Shown here in pieces: positions 13,671-61,410 of a stretch of 64,000 bases of DNA. The DNA comes from Macrostomum lignano. Its lineage: Eukaryota. The notes under the pieces are model-generated. The model saw only the letters and a program-made list of their open reading frames with translations, was not told the origin of the DNA and did not search any database. The stretch is from contig NIVC01002302.1 in assembly GCA_002269645.1 (NCBI GenBank), forward strand, positions 1-64,000. The letters run 5' to 3'. Positions within the stretch are counted from its first letter, which is position 1. The number at the start of each line of letters is the position of its first letter. The translations under genes and the position numbers were made by a program.

Positions 13671-18775
<5,105 letters not shown>

Positions 18776-19455: not shown

Positions 19456-20304
19456 TCACGTCGATCTTGTGAAGTTTCAACTTTACGAAGTCCCTTACTA
19501 GAGTTTTCGACGTTGTGTTGTGAAATTTCGTGTGTGTGTTAATTTAATGTTTCACAATAAAACAAAGGCAATGGCAATTCAGTTGCGACTTCTTTTCTTC
19601 GAAGTAAATAGTCGTAGTCTTTGTGTCAAATTTGATGCAATAATGACTCGAATATTCGGACTATGGTGTCTCCGGAATAATCGCAGCAGTGCGTGGAGTT
19701 GAAGAAAGAATTTTAACGTCTAAAAATGTTACTGAGATACAGTTAGTGGACAAGGCAACTGTGTTCCTACTAACAGCTGGAAGACAGACAATACAAAGAA
19801 GCAGTCTGAAGTAAAACTAAAACAGTATAGTAAACATTCTTCCCTACTGCGGACTGAAAGATTTTTTTATTTAATGCCTTCTTTATGTCCAGAAAATGTC
19901 CCATGAATGCATGCGCTTCCATTTTAGAAAGGAAATTTTCAACAAATTTGTTACACACATAATTTCGTTACAATTTATACTCTTAAACCTGGGCTTCTAA
20001 AGTTGAAAAAATGAAATAATATGCAGTGTCATTACTGCATGGATTGGCTTAGTGTGTAGTGTTAATCAACTTCCATCCATCCTTATCCGATAGGCTCTAA
20101 CTTTCCTATATTCTACAAACAGACACATACTCTATTAATTTTCTGTATTATAAACTTTAAAACAGTTAGAGACATGAAAAAATGACATTTACAGAGGCAA
20201 AATGGAGCAAGCGTATATTGTGTTTTTTTATGTTCCTTCAGATCTCAACTACTAACAGTAAAACAAATTTTCATAATCGACTGAAAACACACTCCACAGC
20301 AACT

Positions 20305-20376
20305 TCCTCGATAGTATAGTGGTCAGTATCTCCGCCTGTCACGTGGAAGGCCCGGGTTCGATTCCCGGTCGGGGAG
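20305..20376 (+). tRNA. tRNA-Asp: tRNA-Asp (GTC)
   Basis: TCCTCGATAGTATAGTGGTCAGTATC-TCCGC CTGTCAC GTGGA-AGGCCCGGGTTCGATTCCCGGTCGGGGAG; 72 nt, A and B boxes present, T7 Pol III terminator at 20380-20386. Confidence 0.95.
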
Positions 20377-20688
20377 AGGTTTTTTTATTCCTACGAGAAT
20401 GTGATTTGGTGCAATAAATTTATTATTTTATACCTCACGAAGTCTTTATTTCTTTTGTTTATCATATTTAAGTCATTTTTACGTTTTTTAAATTTGTCGA
20501 TGTGGAGATTGCTGGCAGTTTTTTTATTCTACTATTAAGTAGCACAATGAGACTATAACTGCATAGTTTGAAAAAAGTTCGGAAAAGCCCTAGATAATTG
20601 TGCATAATTAGGCTGATGCGTGGCTGATGGATGTATTTCGAAATAAAAAATAGTGATAAGGAAGAAAATTTTCTGTGGAAAAAAATTA

Positions 20689-22323: not shown

Positions 22324-23666
22324 CAAGGGTTGTCAGAAAAGTTCTGTGTATATTGTAATAACTTGAGAACAATAAACAGTTTAGAAACATGAAAAGTTAC
22401 AAATGTCTTCCTTAATATCTATTCACTCAAAGTATGAGCCCCCAGCTTAAATGCACTTCTCCCAATGCCACACTAGCCCGTCAATGCCTGCAGTCATGCC
22501 ATTGTTCGTCACGGCGGCAATGCCAGCCTTGTAGGCTCAATTCACGTCTTTCTCTGCGCTGAAATGCTGGCCCCGCATTGACTCCTTGATGCAAAGGAAG
22601 AGAAAAAAGTTGTATGGACTTAAGTCCAGGGAATAAGGCCGATGCAGAAGAATTTGCCATTCCCACAACTTGATCGTAGCCAGCACGCTTTGCTTTCAGT
22701 GTGGGGCTGCATTGTCGTGAAGCAGAATTGGGCCAGCCGCGTGAAGTGCAGGCCTTTTGTCCCGAATGGCACACCAAACTTTCATTAGAACCGACAAGTA
22801 GAAATCACCATTGACCATCTGCCCCACTGGCACAGGCTGATTGAACAACAGACCCTCCCAGTCAAAGAAAGTCAGGTGCATGACCTTCAATTGGCCGATG
22901 CTCCAGATGGCCTTTTGAGGTTGCAGAGAACTTGGCCTGCACCATGTGGCACTCTGCCACTTCAACTCCGCCTCTCAAGAATGTGCCCAGGTTTCGTCGC
23001 AGGCAATGATCCTTTGCAGGAACGCCATGTCCTCCTGCCAACACTGCTGCAGGTTGGATGCGCACATGGCAACCCGCCGAGCTTGCTGATTGTCAGTGAG
23101 TAGATGTGGCACCCACTTGGCACAGACCTTGCGCATCCCAAGGTCCTTGGTCAGGATCTTGTGAACTGAGTTGTAGGACACCCCTATGGAATCAGCCAGC
23201 TGCCTGGTGGTCAGTCTCTGGTCCTGCAGCACGGCTGCCTCCACCTGACTCACCAGGTTGTCAGTCTGAGCACTTGTTGGTTGTCCACTGCGTGGCTTGT
23301 TGTTGAGGTCTTCTTTGCCATTGCGAATGGCAATAGCCCAGTGGCAAATCGTCTCATAAGATAGGCAAAAGTCTCCTATGGTCTGCCGCATTTCTTCAAA
23401 AATCTTGGTTGCTGAATGCTCCTGAAGGACATGAAACTTGATGATTGCTCAATTGTCGCATTTAGAAAAACTCTCTTGCGGGATAGAATGCGCCATGGGT
23501 GTGGTTGAAAAAATACTGCTACATAGGCTAGAAATGATCTGGTGCTCTAAAACTGAAGCTAGCAACTCTTTATATATGTATATATCTATGGCTAAAACCC
23601 CAACTCCTCAGCTATTCATAGAGCTGAGCTATTCTCTAATACATAGAACTTTTCTGACAACCCTCA
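22324..23666 (-). mobile_element. Degenerate mariner (Tc1/mariner) transposon with transposase pseudogene
   Basis: TIR (C/T)(A/G)AGGGTTGTCAGAAAAGTTCT(G/A)TGTAT with TA at the left end. Fragments PRSGQP, KVCAKWVPHLLT, IIACDETW and LLHDNAAPH, with stops and frameshifts. Confidence 0.9.
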
Positions 23667-30900: not shown

Positions 30901-33900
30901 GGAGGCTATTTACATGTGCAGTCAGGGAGGCTATTTACATGTGCAGTCAGGGAGGCTATATTTGTAGTCAGGTAGTAGCACAGCCTGCCCGCTCTCCTCT
31001 CCCCAAATCCCAGGCCAGCACCCAGGGCCGCCAGCTGTCCCTGGACATGGAGCGCGCTGTCCAATCCAGCCGGGCTTTCGACTGCGTCATGCGCGTCAGA
31101 ACTAGCGCCGGCACTCGGCCAGTTGATTTCTACGGCGGCATGTACATGGCCAACACTACGGACGTTGAGACTGGCGTATTCGGCTCTGACAAAGCCGTAG
31201 CGCTCGAGATTAAACACGACGACAAACTGGCCGAAGGTGAATCGGTGCTCATCCAGTGCGCTCTGCTCTACACCGGCATCGGTGGTCAGCGCCGGCTTCG
31301 AATTCACAATCTGGCCCTGGCAACTAGCGCCCAGATGCCCGACGTGTTCCGCTCCGCTGAACTGGACGCCCTAATCAACCTGTTGGCTAAATCGTCTCTT
31401 CATCAGTTGTTAAAACGCGGGCCTAAAGAGGTGCGCGAATCGTTAATTAGCCGCTGCTCAAACATTCTGGCGGCTTATAGGAAGAATTGCGCCAGCAATA
31501 CCGGGCCTGGTCAGCTGATTCTACCCGAGCTGATGAAACTGCTGCCGCTCTATATCAATGCTATCATCAAGAATGACGCCTTCCAGACCGGTGAGTGTTT
31601 GACCGGGTTGCTGTTATCCAGCCACCCCGGAGTTCTTGAGCGGCTTGCTGCTATCCAGCCATCCCGGAGTCCTTGAGCGGGTTGCTGCTATCCAGCCATC
31701 CCGGAGTCCTTGAGCGGGTTGCTGCTATCCAGCCACCTCTGAATCCTTGACCGGGTTGCTGTTATCCAGCCACCTCTGAATCCTTGACCGGGTTGCTGCT
31801 ATCCAGCCACCTCTGAGTCCTTGACCGGGTTGCTGCTATCCAGCCACCTCTGAGTCCTTGACCGGGTTGCTGCTATCCAGCCACCTCTGAGTCCTTGACC
31901 GGGTTGCTGCTATCCAGCCACCTCTGAGTCCTTGACCGGGTTGCTGCTATCCAGCCACCTCTGAGTCCTTGACCGGGTTGCTGCTATCCAGCCACCTCTG
32001 AGTCCTTGACCGGGTTGCTGCTATCCAGCCACCTCTGAGTCCTTGAGCGCCACCTCTGAGTCCTTGAGCGCCACATCTGAGTCCTTGAGCGCCACCTCTG
32101 AGTCCTTGAGCGCCACCTCTGAGTCCTTGAGCGCCACCTCTGAGTCCTTGAGCGCCACCTCTGAGTCCTTGAGCGCCACCTCTGAGTCCTTGAGCGCCAC
32201 CTCTGAGTCCTTGAGCGCCACCTCTGAGTCCTTGAGCGGGTTGCTGCTATCCAGCCACGAGTCTGCATCAGAGACAAGTCAGTTGTTGCCTGTTATCTAA
32301 ACCCTATGCGATTAGGCGTACACAATGCTGAAATATTAATTAGAGTTAATGCTTTAAAAACCAACGGCAGCGTACACTAAACATTAGCTACATTGTTACG
32401 AAATCATTTATTAAACGGATCAATTGGCACACATTATGTGAAATTTTTTGCAAAATTACTAAAAATTTAAGGCTTCTGCGCCGCCTTCATGCCAGAGATT
32501 TGCCACCCATCCGGTGGAATTGGTAAATGGCGGATTATCTTTGTAACTAAGCGTATTTATTGTCTATAGTTAATGGGATGGTAAAGGTACTTCACTGCCC
32601 GATTATTGGTTAACTTTAACTCGACTCTTAAAGACGAAAATTCTAACTCTACATGCACAATATGGTGTTGGATTGCCTTATTTAATAAAACTAGCTAAAT
32701 GGTCTGGTGTTTTTACTCGTACTTATCGCGCTACTGTCAGTAGGCTAAAATGACAATCATTATTTATTGTGCACAAAACAATCACCCGGGCAGGCTCGGA
32801 TGTATCTACTGACGATAGATCCTACCTGATGTACCTGTGCGAGAGCATGGACGTCTTAGCCTCGAATGTGTTCTTCTATCCGCGCCTGATGCCGCTGCAC
32901 GATCTGCCACCAGACTCTCCGGATAGTGAGCAGCCGACTCTGCCAGCGTTCATTCGCTGCTCCGTTGAACGTCTGGATCAGCGCGGCGTCTACCTGCTCG
33001 GTGAGTGGTCTGCGACACAATTGTTGTTTTTGCACAACTAGGGTCAACTGGCAGGCGCGTCGCCACCGGGGGGGGACATGCCAATGCTTCCCCACCACCC
33101 CATCTTGTGACCCGTTGTGGTAATCAAAATAATTTTTCTTCAGGGCGCCAAAATATAGTGCCTGCGGTGCTAAAATGAGTGCCTGTAGTGCTAAAATGAG
33201 TGCCTGCGGTGCTAAAATGAGTGCCTGTGGCGCTAAAATGAGTGCCTGTGGCGCTAAAATGAGTGCCTGTGGCGCTAAAATGAGTGCCTGCGGTGCTAAA
33301 ATGAGTGCCTGCGGCGCTAAAATGAGTGCCTGCGGCGCTAAAATGAGTGCCTGTGGCGCTAAAATAAGTGTCTGCGGCGCTAAAATGAGTGCCTGTGGCG
33401 CTAAAATGAGTGTCTGCGGCGCTAAAATGAGTGCCTGTGGCGCTAAAATGAGTGCCTGTGGTGCTAAAATGAGTGCCTGCGGCGCTAAAATGAGTGCCTG
33501 TGGCGCTAAAATGAGTGCCTGTGGTGCTAAAATGAGTGTCAGTGTCAAAATGAGTGCGTGCTAAAATGAGTGCCTGCGGCGCTAAAATGAGTGCCTGTGG
33601 CGCTAAAATGAGTGACTGCGGCGCTAAAATGAGTGTCTGCGGCGCTAAAATGAGTGCCTGTGGCGCTAAAATGAGTGCCTGTGGTGCTAAAATGAGTGTC
33701 AGTGTCAAAATGAGTGCGTGCTAAAATGAGTGCCTGCGGCGCTAAAATGAGTGCCTGTGGCGCTAAAATGAGTGACTGCGGCGCTAAAATGAGTGCCTGC
33801 GGCGCTAAAATCAGTGCCTGTGGCGCTAAAATGAGTGCCTGTGGCGCTAAAATGAGTGCCTGCGGTGCTAAAATGAGTGCCTGCGGTGCTAAAATGAGTG

Positions 33901-35127
33901 CCTGCGGTGCTAAAATGAGTGCCTGCGGCGCTAAAGTGAGTGCCTGCGGTGCTAAAATGAGTACCTGTGGCGCCAAAATGAGTGCCTGCGGCGCTAAAAT
34001 GAGTGCCTGTGGTGCTAAAATGAGTGCCTGTGGCGCTAAAATGAGTGCCTGCGGTGCTAAAATGAGTGCCTGTGGCGCTAAAATGAGTGCCTGTGGCGCT
34101 AAAATGAGTGCCTGTGGCGCTAAAATAAGTGTCTGCGTCCTGCGGCGCTAAAATAAGCGCTAACAGCCGGATTCTAAAATAATGGAAATGTAGGAATTTA
34201 GTCATGTACATGTTGAAGCCTTGGTTTTGTCCCCCCCACCATAAAATCCATGGCGACGACCCTATCAACTGGGGTATTTTGTGTCAAAGTTGATTTTTTT
34301 AATTGTAATTTGTTGAATTGACCGCCGCTTGACAACACTTAATTTTCAGACAACGGCCTGGTCATGTTCCTGTGGGTAGGACCGAGCGTTGATCCGCACT
34401 GGATTAACCAGGTGTTCGGCGTTAATTCGCTTGAAGAAATTCAAAAGGACATGGTGAGCTTCAACGGCTTGATTAGGCACCCTATTTTTGCTGCTGATTA
34501 AGCTGTAGCAGTAGTGTAAATAGTACACGCGAATTATTCTTTTTAGACTGAACTGCCCGAGTTGGACACGCCGCTGTCTATGCAGATTCGCGGCGTTATC
34601 GATCTAATCAGGCGGAAACGACGGCGTCATATGAGGGTAAATCACTTACTTATTGCCTTTCTGCACCTGCTTTTCTCCTTTTTAGCCACATAATAAATAC
34701 TGTAATAACTAGATGGGCCAAGCAAATATGCGTGTAAGCTACTTTCAGTTCAGTAGTAAGTTAAGAAATGCATTTAAATGTATCTTTTTTTATATCTTTG
34801 AACCCCTACCGCGTCTTCCCAAACAAAAATGTACATTCTATTTGCTAATCATCACTCCAACTGTCCTTCTTTGCCTAAAATAGCTTACTCATTCTTCCTT
34901 ACTACTGAGAGTAGAGAAACAGCTATATATTATATAGTATGCGACTCTAACTAATCATGACTTTAACGTGTCGAATTCTGCAGCTCTTCGTAGTCCGCGC
35001 TAGGGACAAAATGGAGCCCTGGTTCCTCAACTTCCTGGTAGAAGACCGCGGCGTCAGCAACGGCTCGTCCTCCTACGTTGACTTCCTGCTGCACATTCAC
35101 AAGGAGATTCGCAGCCTACTCAGCTAA
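24957..35127 (+). CDS. SEC24C: COPII coat protein SEC24C/D; exons 24957-25132, 26044-26133, 26604-27086, 27408-27588, 27929-28525, 29395-29994, 31014-31590, 32794-33000, 34350-34453, 34547-34636, 34984-35127
   Basis: Pro/Gln-rich N-terminus; GCSPRFIRSTLY; zinc finger RCIRCKAYM...CALC; trunk FMIDV, VGVDLF; AFDCVMRVRTS; GPGQLILPELMKLLPLY; DNGLVMFLWVG; ends YVDFLLHIHKEIRSLLS*. All introns are GT-AG and phase-compatible. C versus D subfamily is not resolvable. Confidence 0.93.
25245..25830. repeat. 21-bp intronic minisatellite (SEC24 intron 1)
   Basis: Unit TCCGAAATCTAGAGGTCTCTA. Confidence 0.95.
28575..29245. repeat. About 21-bp degenerate intronic minisatellite (SEC24 intron 5)
   Basis: Unit CCGGAATCATCATGTCCATCT. 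Confidence 0.9.
29262..29375. repeat. Short 21-bp array just upstream of the 29395 acceptor
   Basis: Unit CCATTCCCTGACAAAAGTC(G/C)C. Confidence 0.85.
30315..30960. repeat. 25-bp intronic minisatellite (SEC24 intron 6)
   Basis: Unit CATGTGCAGTCAGGGAGGCTATTTA. Confidence 0.95.
31598..32260. repeat. 37-bp minisatellite contracting to a 21-bp derivative (SEC24 intron 7)
   Basis: GCTGCTATCCAGCCACCTCTGAGTCCTTGACCGGGTT, then GCCACCTCTGAGTCCTTGAGC from about 32040. Confidence 0.95.
33145..34160. repeat. 21-bp intronic minisatellite (SEC24 intron 8)
   Basis: Unit GCGCTAAAATGAGTGCCTGTG. Confidence 0.95.
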
Positions 35128-40685: not shown

Positions 40686-50375
<9,690 letters not shown>

Positions 50376-57544: not shown

Positions 57545-58020
57545 GACCAGATGAAAACGGTACCAAGGCCAAGAAGCGTCCCAGTGAGTCTCTTGCATCG
57601 GCCCAGAGTCGTTTCAGAGTCGTTGCAGGTAACACAGATGAAATAGGAAAGAAGTGACTATAGAGACTACTCTTAAAAGATGAAATGTCACGGTACAAGT
57701 CGCCAAGAAGTCGTCTAAGAGTCAATTTGAGGCGTTTTATTGTCTGCGACTCTGAAACGACTTTAGGGCGACGCAGGTGACTTTGGGACCGTAGAGTCCT
57801 ATCTGAGACGTGCCAGAGTCGCTATAGAATCACTGAGTTGCGTCTAAAGTGCATCTGCGTCAACTATTTAGTCTACTTGAGTTAGTGGAAAGTTAAGCGT
57901 TAACACAACTGAATTTTAAACAACTTTTTCGCGACTCTTACGATTTTGCAACTCGCGTGATGCTGCTCTCCTGACTCGTCAGTCGCCTCTCCGTCGCATT
58001 ACAGTCAATTGAGTAATTAA
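57545..58020 (-). mobile_element. Inverted copy of the 35340-35760 dispersed repeat
   Basis: Reverse-complement similarity over about 400 bp. Confidence 0.75.
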
Positions 58021-58269
58021 AAATTCACAAGAGTCGCTAGTGAGTTGTTTGTAATCACTCTAGCGATTCTTGTCACTGTAACGTCAATGATGATCCATTC
58101 CAAGTATCCAGTAATCCAGCCTTGCTGCAGAATTCTTTTCCCTCTCGATTTCAGAGTCTCGCCGTTCTGGAACTGACAAATAGCTATTAATTAGTCAAGG
58201 GCGTCAGCGAGATTGAATGCGGCGCTAAGGCTGGCACCGCGGACAGTTTGCCTGAAGTGAACTGGCGCA

Positions 58270-58998
58270 ATGGCATCGGCAAAGACTGACGCCGAGGCCG
58301 GAGTTAAAGTGGCCAATAATGCGGAGTTTTTCGTTTGCAATGCCAACATAGTTGGGCATAGGAATCGAGTTTGGGGCCACAGGAACACGGTGACAGGGAA
58401 TGGCAACCAGGTGTACGGCAATTGGAACCGGGTGGCCGGCACCCGCAACACTGTCCGGGGCATCAACAATCGGGTTGTCGGTGTCAAAAATGACGTCATC
58501 GATGCTAGCACTCTTGGCAGCGCCGGCTCCTCCGCTCCGTCCTCGTCGACATCCTCGGCCGAGGAATCGGCGTCGAACGATGGCGAATCTGCCGCGGCGG
58601 CCGAAGTCCTTGTCAGCGTCTGCAAGCGGGTCCGAGTTCGAACCGACGCCAATGGGCGGCGCCAGCGCGAAAATTTTCACGTCGAACTGGTCGAGCGCCG
58701 ACTATTTGGGGTGGATTTGTCCTCGTCTTGGACGGCCAGCTCGCCGTTGAAAGGATTCAACAATCCAGACACTCTGTACGATTTGTCCGGTCTGGATGGC
58801 GCGGACTCGGACGCCGCCGGCCTGCCCTGCTGCGTCTGCCTCGGCCGGGAGCGCTGCGTCAAGCTGTCCCCCTGCCGGCACGTGCCGGTGTGTCTGGCCT
58901 GCGCCAAGCGCCTGTTTAACGGGGCTCGAACCCGGACTGTCGCTTGTCCGCTGTGTCGCTCGCCTGTTGAATCGGTTGAACGACTGTTTTTGAACTGA
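58270..58998 (+). CDS. Intronless protein with N-terminal VxGxxNx heptad (beta-roll-like) repeats and C-terminal IAP/MDM2-type RING-HC
   Basis: Seven heptads VGHRNR/VWGHRNT/VTGNGNQ/VYGNWNR/VAGTRNT/VRGINNR/VVGVKND; CCVCLGRER...PCRHVPVCLACA...CPLCRSPV..V.RLF; GC-rich coding-like composition. Confidence 0.8.
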   Translation: MASAKTDAEAGVKVANNAEFFVCNANIVGHRNRVWGHRNTVTGNGNQVYGNWNRVAGTRNTVRGINNRVVGVKNDVIDASTLGSAGSSAPSSSTSSAEESASNDGESAAAAEVLVSVCKRVRVRTDANGRRQRENFHVELVERRLFGVDLSSSWTASSPLKGFNNPDTLYDLSGLDGADSDAAGLPCCVCLGRERCVKLSPCRHVPVCLACAKRLFNGARTRTVACPLCRSPVESVERLFLN

Positions 58999-59099
58999 TT
59001 GAATGCGAGTTTAGTCTAAATATGTGGGAGAGATATCTGAGCATTTACCAGCTGCTCAACTCGTATGGAAGCTGATCTTATCTTAGCCGGTAGACGCTT

Positions 59100-59810
59100 A
59101 GATCACCTGGAGGCTACTGTACTGCTTAGCTCACCTGGAGGCTACTGTACTGCTTAGCTCACCTGGAGGCTACTGTACTGATTAGCTCACCTGGAGGCTA
59201 CTGTACTGATTAGCTCACCTGGAGGCTACTGTACTGATTAGCTCACCTGGAGGCTACTGTAGTGATTAGCTCACCTGGAGGCTACTGTACTGCTTAGCTC
59301 ACCTAGAGGCTACTGTACTGATTAGCTCACCAGGAGGCTACTGTACTGCTTAGCTCACCAGGAGGCTACTGTACTGCTTAGCTCACCTGGAGGCTACTGT
59401 ACTGCTTAGCTCACCAGGAGGCTACTGTACTGCTTAGCTCACCTGGAGGCTACTGTACTGCTTAGCTCACCTGGAGGCTACTGTACTGATTAGCTCACCT
59501 GGAGGCTACTGTACTGATTAGCTCACCTGGAGGCTACTGTAGTGATTAGCTCACCTGGAGGCTACTGTACTGCTTAGCTCACCTAGAGGCTACTGTACTG
59601 ATTAGCTCACCAGGAGGCTACTGTACTGCTTAGCTCACCAGGAGGCTACTGTACTGCTTAGCTCACCAGGAGGCTACTGTACTGCTTAGCTCACCTGGAG
59701 GCTACTGTACTGCTTAGCTCACCTGGAGGCTACTGTACTGCTTAGCTCACCTGGAGGCTACTGTACTGATTAGCTCACCTGGAAGCTACTGTACTACTTA
59801 GCTCATCTGT
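59100..59810. repeat. 28-bp minisatellite
   Basis: Unit AGCTCACCTGGAGGCTACTGTACTG(C/A)TT. Confidence 0.95.
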
Positions 59811-60639: not shown

Positions 60640-61410
60640 GGGACAGTCTCCCAGATCCTCAGTTGTTGGGCCACCTTCCCAGATCCTCAGTTGCTGGGCC
60701 ACCACCCTCCCAGATCCTCAGCTGCTGGGCCACCACCCTCCCAGATCCTCAGTTGCTGGGCCACCACCCTCCCAGATGCTCAGTTTTTGGGCCACCCTCC
60801 CAGATGCTCTGTTGCTGGGCCACCAGCCTCCCAGATGCTCAGTTGCTGGGCCATCACCCTCCCAGATCCTCAGTTGCTAGGCCACCAGCCTCCCAGATGC
60901 TCAGTTGCTAGGCCACCACCCTCCCAGATGCTCAGTTGCTAGGCCACCACCCTCCCAGATCCTCAGTTGCTGGGCCACCACCCTCCCAGATGCTCAGTTG
61001 CTAGGCCACCACCCTCCCAGATCCTCAGTTGCTGGGCCACCACCCTCCCAGATCCTCAGTTGCTAGGCCACCAGCCTCCCAGATGCTCAGTTGCTGGGCC
61101 ACCACCCTCCCAGATGCTCAGTTGCTAGGCCACCACCCTCCCAGATCCTCAGTTGCTGGGCCACCACCCTCCCAGATGCTCAGTTGCTAGGCCACCACCC
61201 TCCCAGATCCTCAGTTGCTGGGCCACCACCCTCCCAAATGCTCAGTTTTTTGGGCCACCCTCCCAGATCCTCAGTTACTAGGCCACCACCCTCCCAGATG
61301 CTCAGTTGCTGGGCCACCACCCTCCCAAATGCTCAGTTTTTTGGGCCACCCTCCCAGATCCTCAGTTACTAGGCCACCACCCTCCCAGATGCTCAGTTGC
61401 TGGGCCACCC
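60640..61410. repeat. 31-bp minisatellite
   Basis: Unit CTCCCAGAT(C/G)CTCAGTTGCT(G/A)GGCCACCACC. Confidence 0.95.

Follow-up and report, generated by a model that had tools for sequence, protein, structure and literature searches.

A beta-roll-RING gene of the flatworm Macrostomum lignano, probably acquired horizontally, belongs to a giant-virus-type family of predicted ubiquitin ligases

The flatworm Macrostomum lignano carries a gene whose product joins a beta-roll of antifreeze and adhesin type to a C-terminal RING domain. We think it rather likely that this is a real, resident and transcribed flatworm gene, encoding a modular RING E3 ligase of a giant-virus-type family and captured horizontally. 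The gene lies in a 64-kb stretch of contig NIVC01002302.1 (the window; Table 1), and its open reading frame (ORF) is identical to a called gene on that contig. An in-frame stop codon precedes the ATG by four codons. Full-length alignments place the protein in a family with co-linear roll and RING, which is large and has no characterised member.

Table 1. The beta-roll-RING gene, the parts of its product and neighbouring sequence features, in window coordinates
Feature	Position	Strand	Description and basis
Complete single-exon CDS, beta-roll-RING protein	58270..58998	+	242 aa plus stop, ATG to TGA
N-terminal beta-roll, aa 10-78	58297..58503	+	Predicted; ten 3-5-residue strands spaced 7 residues (AlphaFold2)
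Overt heptads, aa 23-78	58336-58503	+	
Disordered acidic Ser/Ala-rich linker, aa 79-118	58504..58623	+	pLDDT 32-41; composition
Basic beta-hairpin, aa 119-137	58624..58680	+	Predicted; AlphaFold2 strands 119-125 and 131-137, moderate pLDDT; BLASTP with P0003
Second spacer, mostly low confidence, aa 138-185	58681..58824	+	pLDDT <50 at aa 137-162, 60-86 at aa 163-185
C3HC4 RING, IAP/MDM2/IDOL class, aa 186-236	58825..58977	+	Pfam, Foldseek, Zn ligands
Short C-terminal tail past the RING	58978..58995	+	Aromatic residue F240 third from end
28-bp minisatellite, 25.5 copies	59096..59809	.	Begins 98 nt past the stop codon; a neighbour, gene membership not implied
Small inverted repeat, upstream of the ORF	57587-57782		
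Pyrimidine tract plus AG	58133..58154	+	116 nt 5' of the ATG; from sequence

The N-terminal region is built from heptads in perfect 7-residue register. Eight units follow in the order CNANIVG, HRNRVWG, HRNTVTG, NGNQVYG, NWNRVAG, TRNTVRG, INNRVVG and VKNDVID. A sequence-only reading of this DNA had counted seven perfect heptads. The pattern N-x-V-x-G is strict in six (equivalently, six strict VxGxxNx); the seventh is a variant in which Ile replaces Val, and the eighth unit is degenerate. The longest in-register run is 6, against 2 in 200,000 shuffles of the protein. At the DNA level the 21-nt units have diverged, so the repetition is one of protein sequence and not a recent tandem array of DNA. 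AlphaFold2 models the roll as a regular solenoid of ten short strands with pLDDT 93-97, in agreement with the beta-roll first proposed; modelled by itself, the domain reaches pLDDT 88 and pTM 0.77. The geometry would be five turns made of ten 7-residue half-turns, in which Asn forms a ladder, Val fills the core and Gly sits at the corner.

The suggested likeness to the rolls of grass ice-recrystallisation-inhibition (IRI) proteins and to YadA-type adhesin heads holds at the level of fold class. Pfam LbR_Ice_bind (PF21300) matches the flatworm protein at aa 22-76 (E 5.3e-5) with a score of 23.7 bits, under the Pfam cut-off of 30. Taken with the matches of its family, this supports the PF21300 fold class and not strict membership in PF21300. 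Searched against the PDB, a profile of the family's N-terminal region matches the Lolium perenne IRI protein (LpIRI, 3ult) at E 4.4e-25, a likeness of sequence profile rather than of coordinates. The same profile matches the head of the trimeric autotransporter BpaC (7o23) at E 3.3e-15, and further matches are the heads of CbpF and UspA1.

The C-terminal domain is a RING of the IAP/MDM2 type, as the sequence-only reading had also recognised. Pfam zf-C3HC4_3 (PF13920) matches it at E 2.5e-10, with 40.4 bits against a cut-off of 27, and the Mdm2 RING is matched by sequence at E 3.5e-5. All eight Zn ligands are present in C3HC4 order and cross-brace spacing (C187, C190, C202, H204, C208, C211, C226, C229). 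The RING model (AlphaFold2, pLDDT 86-96) superposes in Foldseek on cIAP2, IDOL, cIAP1, BIRC7 and XIAP with an rmsd of 1.2-1.7 A over 56-58 residues. The protein thus shares with the IAP/MDM2/IDOL/MUL1/MEX3C ligases (cIAP2 3eb5, IDOL 2yhn, BIRC7 4auq, Mdm2 2hdp) the zf-C3HC4_3 subfamily, the placement of the RING at the extreme C-terminus and a short tail, and the cIAP2 alignment reaches the penultimate residue of both chains. Unlike that group, it has no FERM, KH or p53-binding domain by Pfam, and no BIR domain in a Pfam scan at E<=10; in their place a beta-roll stands on the substrate side. From the fold and the conserved residues we infer an E3 ligase of zf-C3HC4_3 type, able to bind an E2 and transfer ubiquitin.

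The architecture defines a widespread but uncharacterised family and not the one-off that it had seemed. An exhaustive search (50% clustering) returned 609 relatives at E<=1e-3, and the beta-roll and the C-terminal RING were both matched, separately, in 111 of 155 proteins examined. Among 46 aligned members, 45 match LbR_Ice_bind at E<=0.001 (best 6.5e-18) and 45 match zf-C3HC4_3; the seven Zn-binding Cys are conserved in 46/46 and the His in 40/46. The tail is equally constant: 13 residues follow the last CxxC in the flatworm protein and 11-16 in all 46 members, with Phe or Tyr in the F240 column in 40. P0004 aligns to the flatworm protein at E 7.5e-16 over about aa 12-242 with 31% identity and the same C-terminal end. 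Metagenomic members such as P0004, P0155, P0018, P0028 and P0103 show 21-33% identity in full-length alignments and have the same plan: an Asn/Val/Gly heptad roll stands at the N-terminus, the spacer that follows is variable, and a C3HC4 RING closes the chain, which stops 11-16 residues past the last CxxC and has an aromatic residue in the third-to-last position. They differ in their spacers, which are unrelated to that of the flatworm, and in their setting, since they lie in dense intronless virus-like genomes whereas the flatworm gene sits between intron-bearing animal genes. The repeat differs as well: across the family Asn is strong only at every second heptad (40-45/46 vs 20-22/46), a 14-residue period, whereas in the flatworm it recurs in every heptad.

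Other searches recovered little of the family. A word-indexed search with the whole protein returned only the near-identical genomic copy and one RING-only match, missing the family, and the same kind of search with the family alignment returned mostly YadA-like adhesins of Veillonella and Fusobacterium, with no two-domain member from a named organism. IMG/VR scans with the single members P0153 and P0016 gave no relatives. Foldseek searches of the full model against the PDB and the predicted viral structures of BFVD were dominated by RING matches. BFVD held no clear beta-roll-RING protein; the N-terminal model found there one marginal beta-roll match, from Marseillevirus LCMAC202 (E 2.4e-4). 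The literature search found nothing relevant on the gene, on Macrostomum together with giant viruses, or on IRI together with RING.

The relatives sampled outside the flatworm lie on virus-like DNA. Ten carrier contigs (L003, L005, L008, L010, L011, L012, L014, L015, L016 and L017) have a density of 1-1.5 genes per kb, with genes on both strands; they are intronless and rich in ORFans, and the majority of their genes have no Pfam match. Genes with a Pfam match include zf-MYND, DUF4116, F-box, Ank, SET and ubiquitin; a histone, DHFR-TS, dUTPase and a furin-like protease are also encoded. One of the ten, L008, encodes a homolog of the major capsid protein (E 5e-6 to Pfam Capsid_NCLDV; E 2e-10 to the major capsid protein chains 7yjl and 6ojn in the PDB), and the other nine are marked by virus-typical gene density, ORFans and domain content only. 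Large neighbouring ORFs on the carrier contigs gave no PDB or Pfam match pointing to a virus family. On the explanation we favor, the contigs are, by their gene content, of giant-virus (Nucleocytoviricota) type.

In the flatworm, the gene is at home in the host genome. A second copy, 99% identical, lies on another contig, where it too is a called gene, and the neighbours are the same at both copies: the gene for a PKA regulatory subunit lies upstream and that for Rpb11 downstream. The genes around the ORF are intron-bearing host genes. A paralog, P0003, shares 42% identity and has kept both the roll and the middle hairpin, so the gene is old in the Macrostomum lineage. High GC of the ORF was considered as a mark of foreign DNA and rejected, since its GC3 (0.69) equals that of host exons (0.67-0.82).

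Age and fully host-like composition would also fit vertical descent, in which the fusion arose in cellular eukaryotes, giant viruses took it from protist hosts and Macrostomum is among the few sampled animals that keep it. Host RING genes are often captured by giant viruses, and the beta-roll occurs without a RING in the cellular organisms Amorphochlora (P0007) and a Marinicaulis MAG (P0010). Three observations make this descent unlikely. Among 30 clusters looked up, M. lignano is the only named organism with both domains. The closest non-Macrostomum match is only 31-33% identical, and it lies on a virus-like contig. Finally, the CDS is intronless, as the sequence-only reading had noted and as its full-length co-linearity with intronless relatives such as P0004 bears out, whereas M. 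lignano genes average about 5 introns (PMC5730564). The architecture was initially described as unfamiliar from animals, and no other animal in the protein collections searched has it; because these collections cover eukaryotes unevenly, its absence from other animals and from protists is provisional. The flatworm probably acquired the gene horizontally, because environmental DNA of giant-virus-like character is almost the only place where the family occurs. A viral or horizontal origin, raised as one option in the sequence-only reading, is the best-supported one.

How the roll contributes to the ligase admits a second reading. It may be an oligomerisation scaffold that clusters RINGs as in trimeric adhesin heads, with targets chosen elsewhere, for example by the basic hairpin. 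Many RING ligases are activated by clustering, and the trimeric autotransporter heads matched by the family profile are of a related repeat type. The hairpin is shared by the M. lignano paralogs, and only P0003 keeps it. We nevertheless hold this role to be rather improbable. Pfam Hep_Hag (PF05658) matches 0/46 members at E<=0.001 and is absent from the flatworm protein at E<=10, against 45/46 for LbR_Ice_bind, a monomeric roll. The middle region is, moreover, not conserved across the family. Compared with YadA-like adhesins, the flatworm protein lacks both the YadA membrane anchor and a signal peptide, is intracellular and is not encoded by a bacterial gene. The Ser-rich linker described at the outset is indeed there (Ser/Ala/Thr/Gly 67.5%, five acidic residues, pLDDT <50), and it is not conserved beyond Macrostomum. 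A word-indexed search with the non-repeat middle (aa 100-185) had no matches, missing even the 99% identical copy, and is therefore uninformative about flatworm orthologs.

Transcription of the ORF is inferred from the way the genome was annotated. The sole source of this assembly's GenBank gene set is RNA-seq-guided transcript assembly, from which transcripts that overlapped repeats or had low expression were left out (PMC5730564). The pyrimidine tract and AG upstream of the ATG could, judged by their letters, act as a cis- or SL trans-splice acceptor of a 5' UTR; trans-splicing affects 38.8% of the genes of M. lignano (PMC5730564).

That the ORF is a relic, either the decaying remnant of a viral genome that had integrated or a spurious gene model that happens to be open, we regard as improbable. 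It is a single orphan gene with no other virus-like genes nearby, and the case for its expression comes from the annotation method, not from reads. The two genomic copies are too alike for a test of constraint: they differ in the ORF by 5 nt (2 non-synonymous, 3 synonymous) and their flanks are equally similar, so the pair has no power to show selection. Against decay, the ORF is open and intact in both copies, the solenoid ladder is complete, as is the set of Zn ligands, and the diverged paralog retains roll and hairpin. Composition has become fully host-like, which takes long, and the frame is still open. The gene model, too, passed an annotation that excluded repeat-overlapping and low-expression transcripts.

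Repeats at the locus are uninformative on mobility of the ORF. The sequence-only reading had described the gene as flanked by repeats, which is right insofar as a minisatellite lies downstream and a small inverted repeat upstream; terminal repeats bracketing the ORF are absent, and no LTR, TIR or target-site duplication pair was found around it. The minisatellite is shorter at the second genomic copy. About 30 such repeat arrays occur in the window, and repeats beside an ORF are therefore the norm for this genome.

The roll is predicted to share the fold class of an ice-binding protein without its surface. It is like the Lolium protein in that the half-turn has 7 residues, among them Asn, an aliphatic residue and Gly, the roll being a prediction here. 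The Lolium protein is secreted, has no RING and binds ice through a flat face of small residues, whereas the flatworm protein combines a fused RING and a Pfam score below cut-off with exposed residues rich in Arg, Trp and Tyr. Heptad position 4 carries N, R, T, Q, R, T, R and D, and position 6 carries V, W, T, Y, A, R, V and I, so that the exposed residues are R, W, Y, Q, T, A and V in place of a flat small or hydroxyl face. The proposed absence of a signal peptide also stands, with a top 15-residue Kyte-Doolittle mean of 0.87 among the first 20 windows. An ice-binding or cold-sensing ligase, whose roll binds ice or ordered water in the manner of grass IRI proteins and couples this to ubiquitination, is thus very improbable despite the LpIRI likeness in sequence and predicted fold, because the exposed positions are bulky or charged with no flat Thr/Ser array, the grass proteins are secreted, the same repeat builds adhesin heads unrelated to ice, and the relatives come from varied environments on contigs of 31% to 59% GC. 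The finding gives no evidence for antifreeze biology in animals.

For the captured, resident ligase that we favor, the parts suggest a working model. The RING would recruit an E2 charged with ubiquitin and, by analogy with IAP-class RINGs, would probably do so as a dimer formed through the tail. The rigid roll, with its exposed Arg, Trp, Tyr, Gln and Thr, may be a target-binding or self-association module that does not bind ice. In viruses, beta-roll-RING ligases would divert the ubiquitination of the host. The flatworm may have gained its copy by horizontal capture, either from such a virus or from the organism that the virus infects; the copy would then have taken on the codon usage of the flatworm, undergone duplication and persisted.

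What defines a RING ligase is the binding partner of its non-RING part, and an ice-binding or adhesin-type beta-roll as the recognition module of a RING ligase is undescribed in the papers searched. The family is large and apparently mainly one of uncultivated giant viruses, and it may be a common, unstudied viral tool for steering ubiquitination in the host. M. lignano is a tractable model for which genome and transcriptome resources exist, which makes its copy convenient for describing how one member is expressed and structured. The copy is, in addition, a candidate for virus-to-animal gene transfer, a kind of event rarely documented. More tentatively, the gene could be a domesticated giant-virus ubiquitin ligase in a free-living flatworm, from a never-studied family whose hundreds of diverged members would form a new RING E3 class, with an antifreeze/adhesin-type beta-roll as recognition module, by which large DNA viruses manipulate host ubiquitination. 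If true, this would be indirect evidence of giant viruses infecting the Macrostomum germ line or being in intimate contact with it.

The window gene encodes an N-terminal beta-roll and a C-terminal RING. Its ORF is intact (242 codons) and is preceded by an in-frame stop four codons 5' of the ATG. Eight heptads occupy residues 23-78 (CNANIVG, HRNRVWG, HRNTVTG, NGNQVYG, NWNRVAG, TRNTVRG, INNRVVG, VKNDVID), six of them strict N-x-V-x-G units in perfect register; the longest such run in 200,000 protein shuffles was two. The 21-nt units coding the heptads differ from one another, so the periodicity is kept at the protein level and does not stem from recent DNA duplication. Ser, Ala, Thr and Gly make up 67.5% of residues 79-118, which include five acidic residues. 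Residues 186-236 match Pfam zf-C3HC4_3 above its curated cut-off (E 2.5e-10) with all eight zinc ligands, and sequence analysis found no hydrophobic N-terminal segment. The sequence-only reading, of seven heptads and a Ser-rich linker leading to an IAP/MDM2-type RING without a signal peptide, was thus accurate, except that its "seven perfect" heptads are six strict units and a seventh with Ile for Val. Two antisense ORFs overlap the gene; neither has its own homologs, and both most plausibly arise as a side effect of GC-rich third positions in the sense frame.

Structure prediction supports both domains. An AlphaFold2 model built from an alignment of 46 family members places ten short strands at exact seven-residue spacing in residues 10-78 (pLDDT 93-97), followed by the RING (pLDDT 86-96); both spacers are disordered, save for a weakly supported hairpin at 119-137. 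Modelled by itself, the N-terminal domain reached pLDDT 88 and pTM 0.77. The RING superposes on those of cIAP2, IDOL, cIAP1, BIRC7 and XIAP (1.2-1.7 Å over 56-58 residues), and its nearest relative by sequence is Mdm2. A profile of N-terminal domains matched the Lolium perenne ice-recrystallisation-inhibition protein 3ult (E 4.4e-25) and, more weakly, trimeric autotransporter adhesin heads (BpaC at 3.3e-15, then CbpF and UspA1). Pfam LbR_Ice_bind is matched by 45 of the 46 members, the window protein scoring 23.7 bits against a cut-off of 30; Hep_Hag is matched by none of the 46. The proposed likeness to ice-recrystallisation-inhibition and adhesin repeats therefore holds for repeat type and predicted fold. 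Ice binding itself is unlikely, because the exposed surface is bulky and charged and the protein intracellular, and the suggested ice sensor finds no support.

The architecture, first taken as possibly novel, is not unique but belongs to a large family. An exhaustive search over 1.84 billion cluster representatives returned 609 relatives at E<=1e-3. When each query half was tested separately against the best 150 of these plus cluster mates (155 proteins), 111 carried roll and RING, 30 the RING only and 14 the roll only. Members are mostly 190-420 residues long. The alignment with the metagenomic relative P0004 (31% identity) starts at residue 12 and runs through the final residue, the two C-termini coinciding. 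None of 46 aligned members lacks any of the seven zinc-binding Cys, and 40 have the His; every chain ends 11-16 residues past the last CxxC, with Phe or Tyr third from the C-terminus in 40. Gly corners are kept in 40-46 members. The heptad Asn is kept in 40-45 at every second heptad versus only 20-22 at the alternate ones, implying a 14-residue turn like that of the Lolium protein. The spacers show no conservation beyond Macrostomum.

Family members probably reside mainly in Nucleocytoviricota, on good but not conclusive evidence. Among 30 clusters looked up, all two-domain members came from ENA, JGI or Logan metagenome or read-archive assemblies. Three entries carried organism names: the M. 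lignano paralog P0003 (roll and middle region, without the RING in its deposited model), the alga Amorphochlora and a Marinicaulis MAG, the latter two with the roll only. Ten carrier contigs inspected have tightly packed, intron-free genes on both strands. Most products lack a Pfam or PDB match; those that match are of kinds typical of large eukaryotic DNA viruses, including zf-MYND, DUF4116, DUF5757, F-box, ankyrin, SET, ubiquitin, histones (one apparently fused), bifunctional DHFR-TS, dUTPase, a homing endonuclease and a furin-like protease. One contig (L008) has a gene for a homolog of the major capsid protein (Capsid_NCLDV, E 5e-6; PDB chains 7yjl and 6ojn, E 2e-10). Carrier GC spans 31% to 59%, so several lineages are involved. 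Against this residence count the BFVD library, with a single marginal beta-roll match (Marseillevirus LCMAC202), and IMG/VR, where queries with two single members returned no relatives. Histone-fold proteins lie near the beta-roll-RING gene on two contigs, one of 515 aa with a core-histone domain and possibly a fusion. Recurrent zf-MYND neighbours, some with DUF4116 or TPR, suggest local clusters of host-interaction genes, and L003 carries an additional RING-only zf-C3HC4_3 gene.

Horizontal acquisition, with a giant virus or that virus's host as donor, is the best-supported and most economical origin for the flatworm gene, a reading we favour with some reserve and one that the sequence-only reading had raised as a possibility. 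Its coding sequence has no introns, in a genome averaging about five per gene (PMC5730564); the protein collections searched showed this architecture in no other animal; and its nearest non-Macrostomum relatives, 31-33% identical, lie on virus-like contigs. A word-indexed search with residues 100-185 did not recover even the near-identical (99%) protein of M. lignano, so negatives from this kind of search with short or low-complexity queries do not equal absence. Vertical descent with wide loss, and viral capture from protists, is a less likely alternative. Contamination is ruled out, since the gene is syntenic with host genes on two contigs and its codon composition is like that of the host. 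After horizontal acquisition the gene would have resided for long in the flatworm, ameliorated and duplicated; M. lignano has two lineages, 42% identical, that share the roll and a basic hairpin.

The gene sits in ordinary host surroundings. It is a called gene on NIVC01002302.1 (GCA_002269645.1), and its 99% identical counterpart, BOX15_Mlig030838g1, is found on NIVC01002002.1 among the same neighbours. The assembly is known to be redundant, with duplicated blocks sharing 95% identity or more adding up to 180 Mb (PMC5730564), and the second copy is in keeping with this. The copies differ at five bases (two non-synonymous, three synonymous) and their flanks are about as similar, too little to resolve selection between them. 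The GenBank annotation derives only from genome-guided RNA-seq transcript assembly, with low-expression, non-coding and repeat-overlapping transcripts discarded (PMC5730564); this implies transcript support for the two models, the copies being indistinguishable at 99% identity. The remaining window genes (SPRY, Sec24, PKA-R, Rpb11) are intron-bearing and host-type. GC3 is 0.69 in the ORF and 0.67-0.82 in host exons, so its GC excess over the flanks is an exon signature of this genome. Of the description "intronless and flanked by repeats", the first part stands; the repeat is a 28-bp minisatellite typical of a window with about thirty such arrays, and no bracketing terminal repeats were found in the flanks. 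This array differs in length between the duplicates: on contig L001, which carries the second copy, it is shorter by about 450 nt. An inverted repeat upstream of the ORF, in a GAGTCG-motif-rich stretch and conserved between both copies, may belong to the promoter region or represent a small element of foldback or MITE-like type.

Other window elements are listed in the table. The tandem arrays span the whole window (16-82-bp units, up to 60 copies, 90-98% identity), several giving long spurious ORFs in multiple frames. A 428-aa ORF1-like frame without Pfam match precedes the retrotransposon ORF2; as neither is interrupted, this may be a young insertion. The phospholipase A2-like frame is, by sequence, a candidate virus-derived or mobile-element part.

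Features in the window and on metagenomic carrier contigs
Feature	Sequence	Position	Strand	Details
Beta-roll-RING ORF	window	58270-58998	+	
Antisense ORFs	window	58191-58680	-	two, 151-153 aa
Inverted repeat	window	57587-57782		36-nt pair, 83% complementary, 124 nt apart; ~500 nt upstream of ORF
28-bp minisatellite	window	59096-59809		25.5 copies; just 3' of stop codon
PKA regulatory subunit gene	window	upstream of ORF	-	neighbour on both contigs
Rpb11-type RNA polymerase subunit gene	window	downstream of ORF		neighbour on both contigs
Phospholipase A2-like frame, parvovirus VP1 type	window	1929-2663	+	PF08398, E 1.3e-13
ORFs opposite that frame	window	1418-2186	-	nearby frames without Pfam match
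Non-LTR retrotransposon	window	13671-18772	+	unbroken 1277-aa ORF2: endonuclease, reverse transcriptase, RNase H
tRNA-Asp (GTC) gene	window	20304-20377	+	Rfam 58 bits; isolated, AT-rich surroundings
Mariner-type transposase N-terminus, fragment	window	22978-23448	-	HTH_48 and HTH_32 matches
Tandem arrays (examples)	window	3769-4555, 7066-8395, 33144-34137, 42314-43953, 60648-61409		
Histone-fold protein	L010	2569-4116		
Histone-fold protein	L017	3512-3979		
zf-MYND proteins	L003	6607-10798, 11519-12409		
zf-MYND proteins	L014	165-1415, 15888-17726		
zf-MYND protein	L015	39-1145		

The analyses establish the domain order, folds, conserved ligands and tail of the window protein, and we infer the remaining mechanism. 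The probable role of the RING, together with its short tail bearing an aromatic residue, is to recruit a charged E2, likely as a dimer by analogy with IAP-class RINGs. The flexible acidic linker would supply reach, and the rigid roll, its surface rich in Arg, Trp, Tyr, Gln and Thr, would bind a target or drive self-association. For viral members, the natural guess is that they redirect host ubiquitination. The beta-roll-RING proteins are an unstudied, virus-associated family, and the window protein is a putative RING E3 whose recognition module is unusual.
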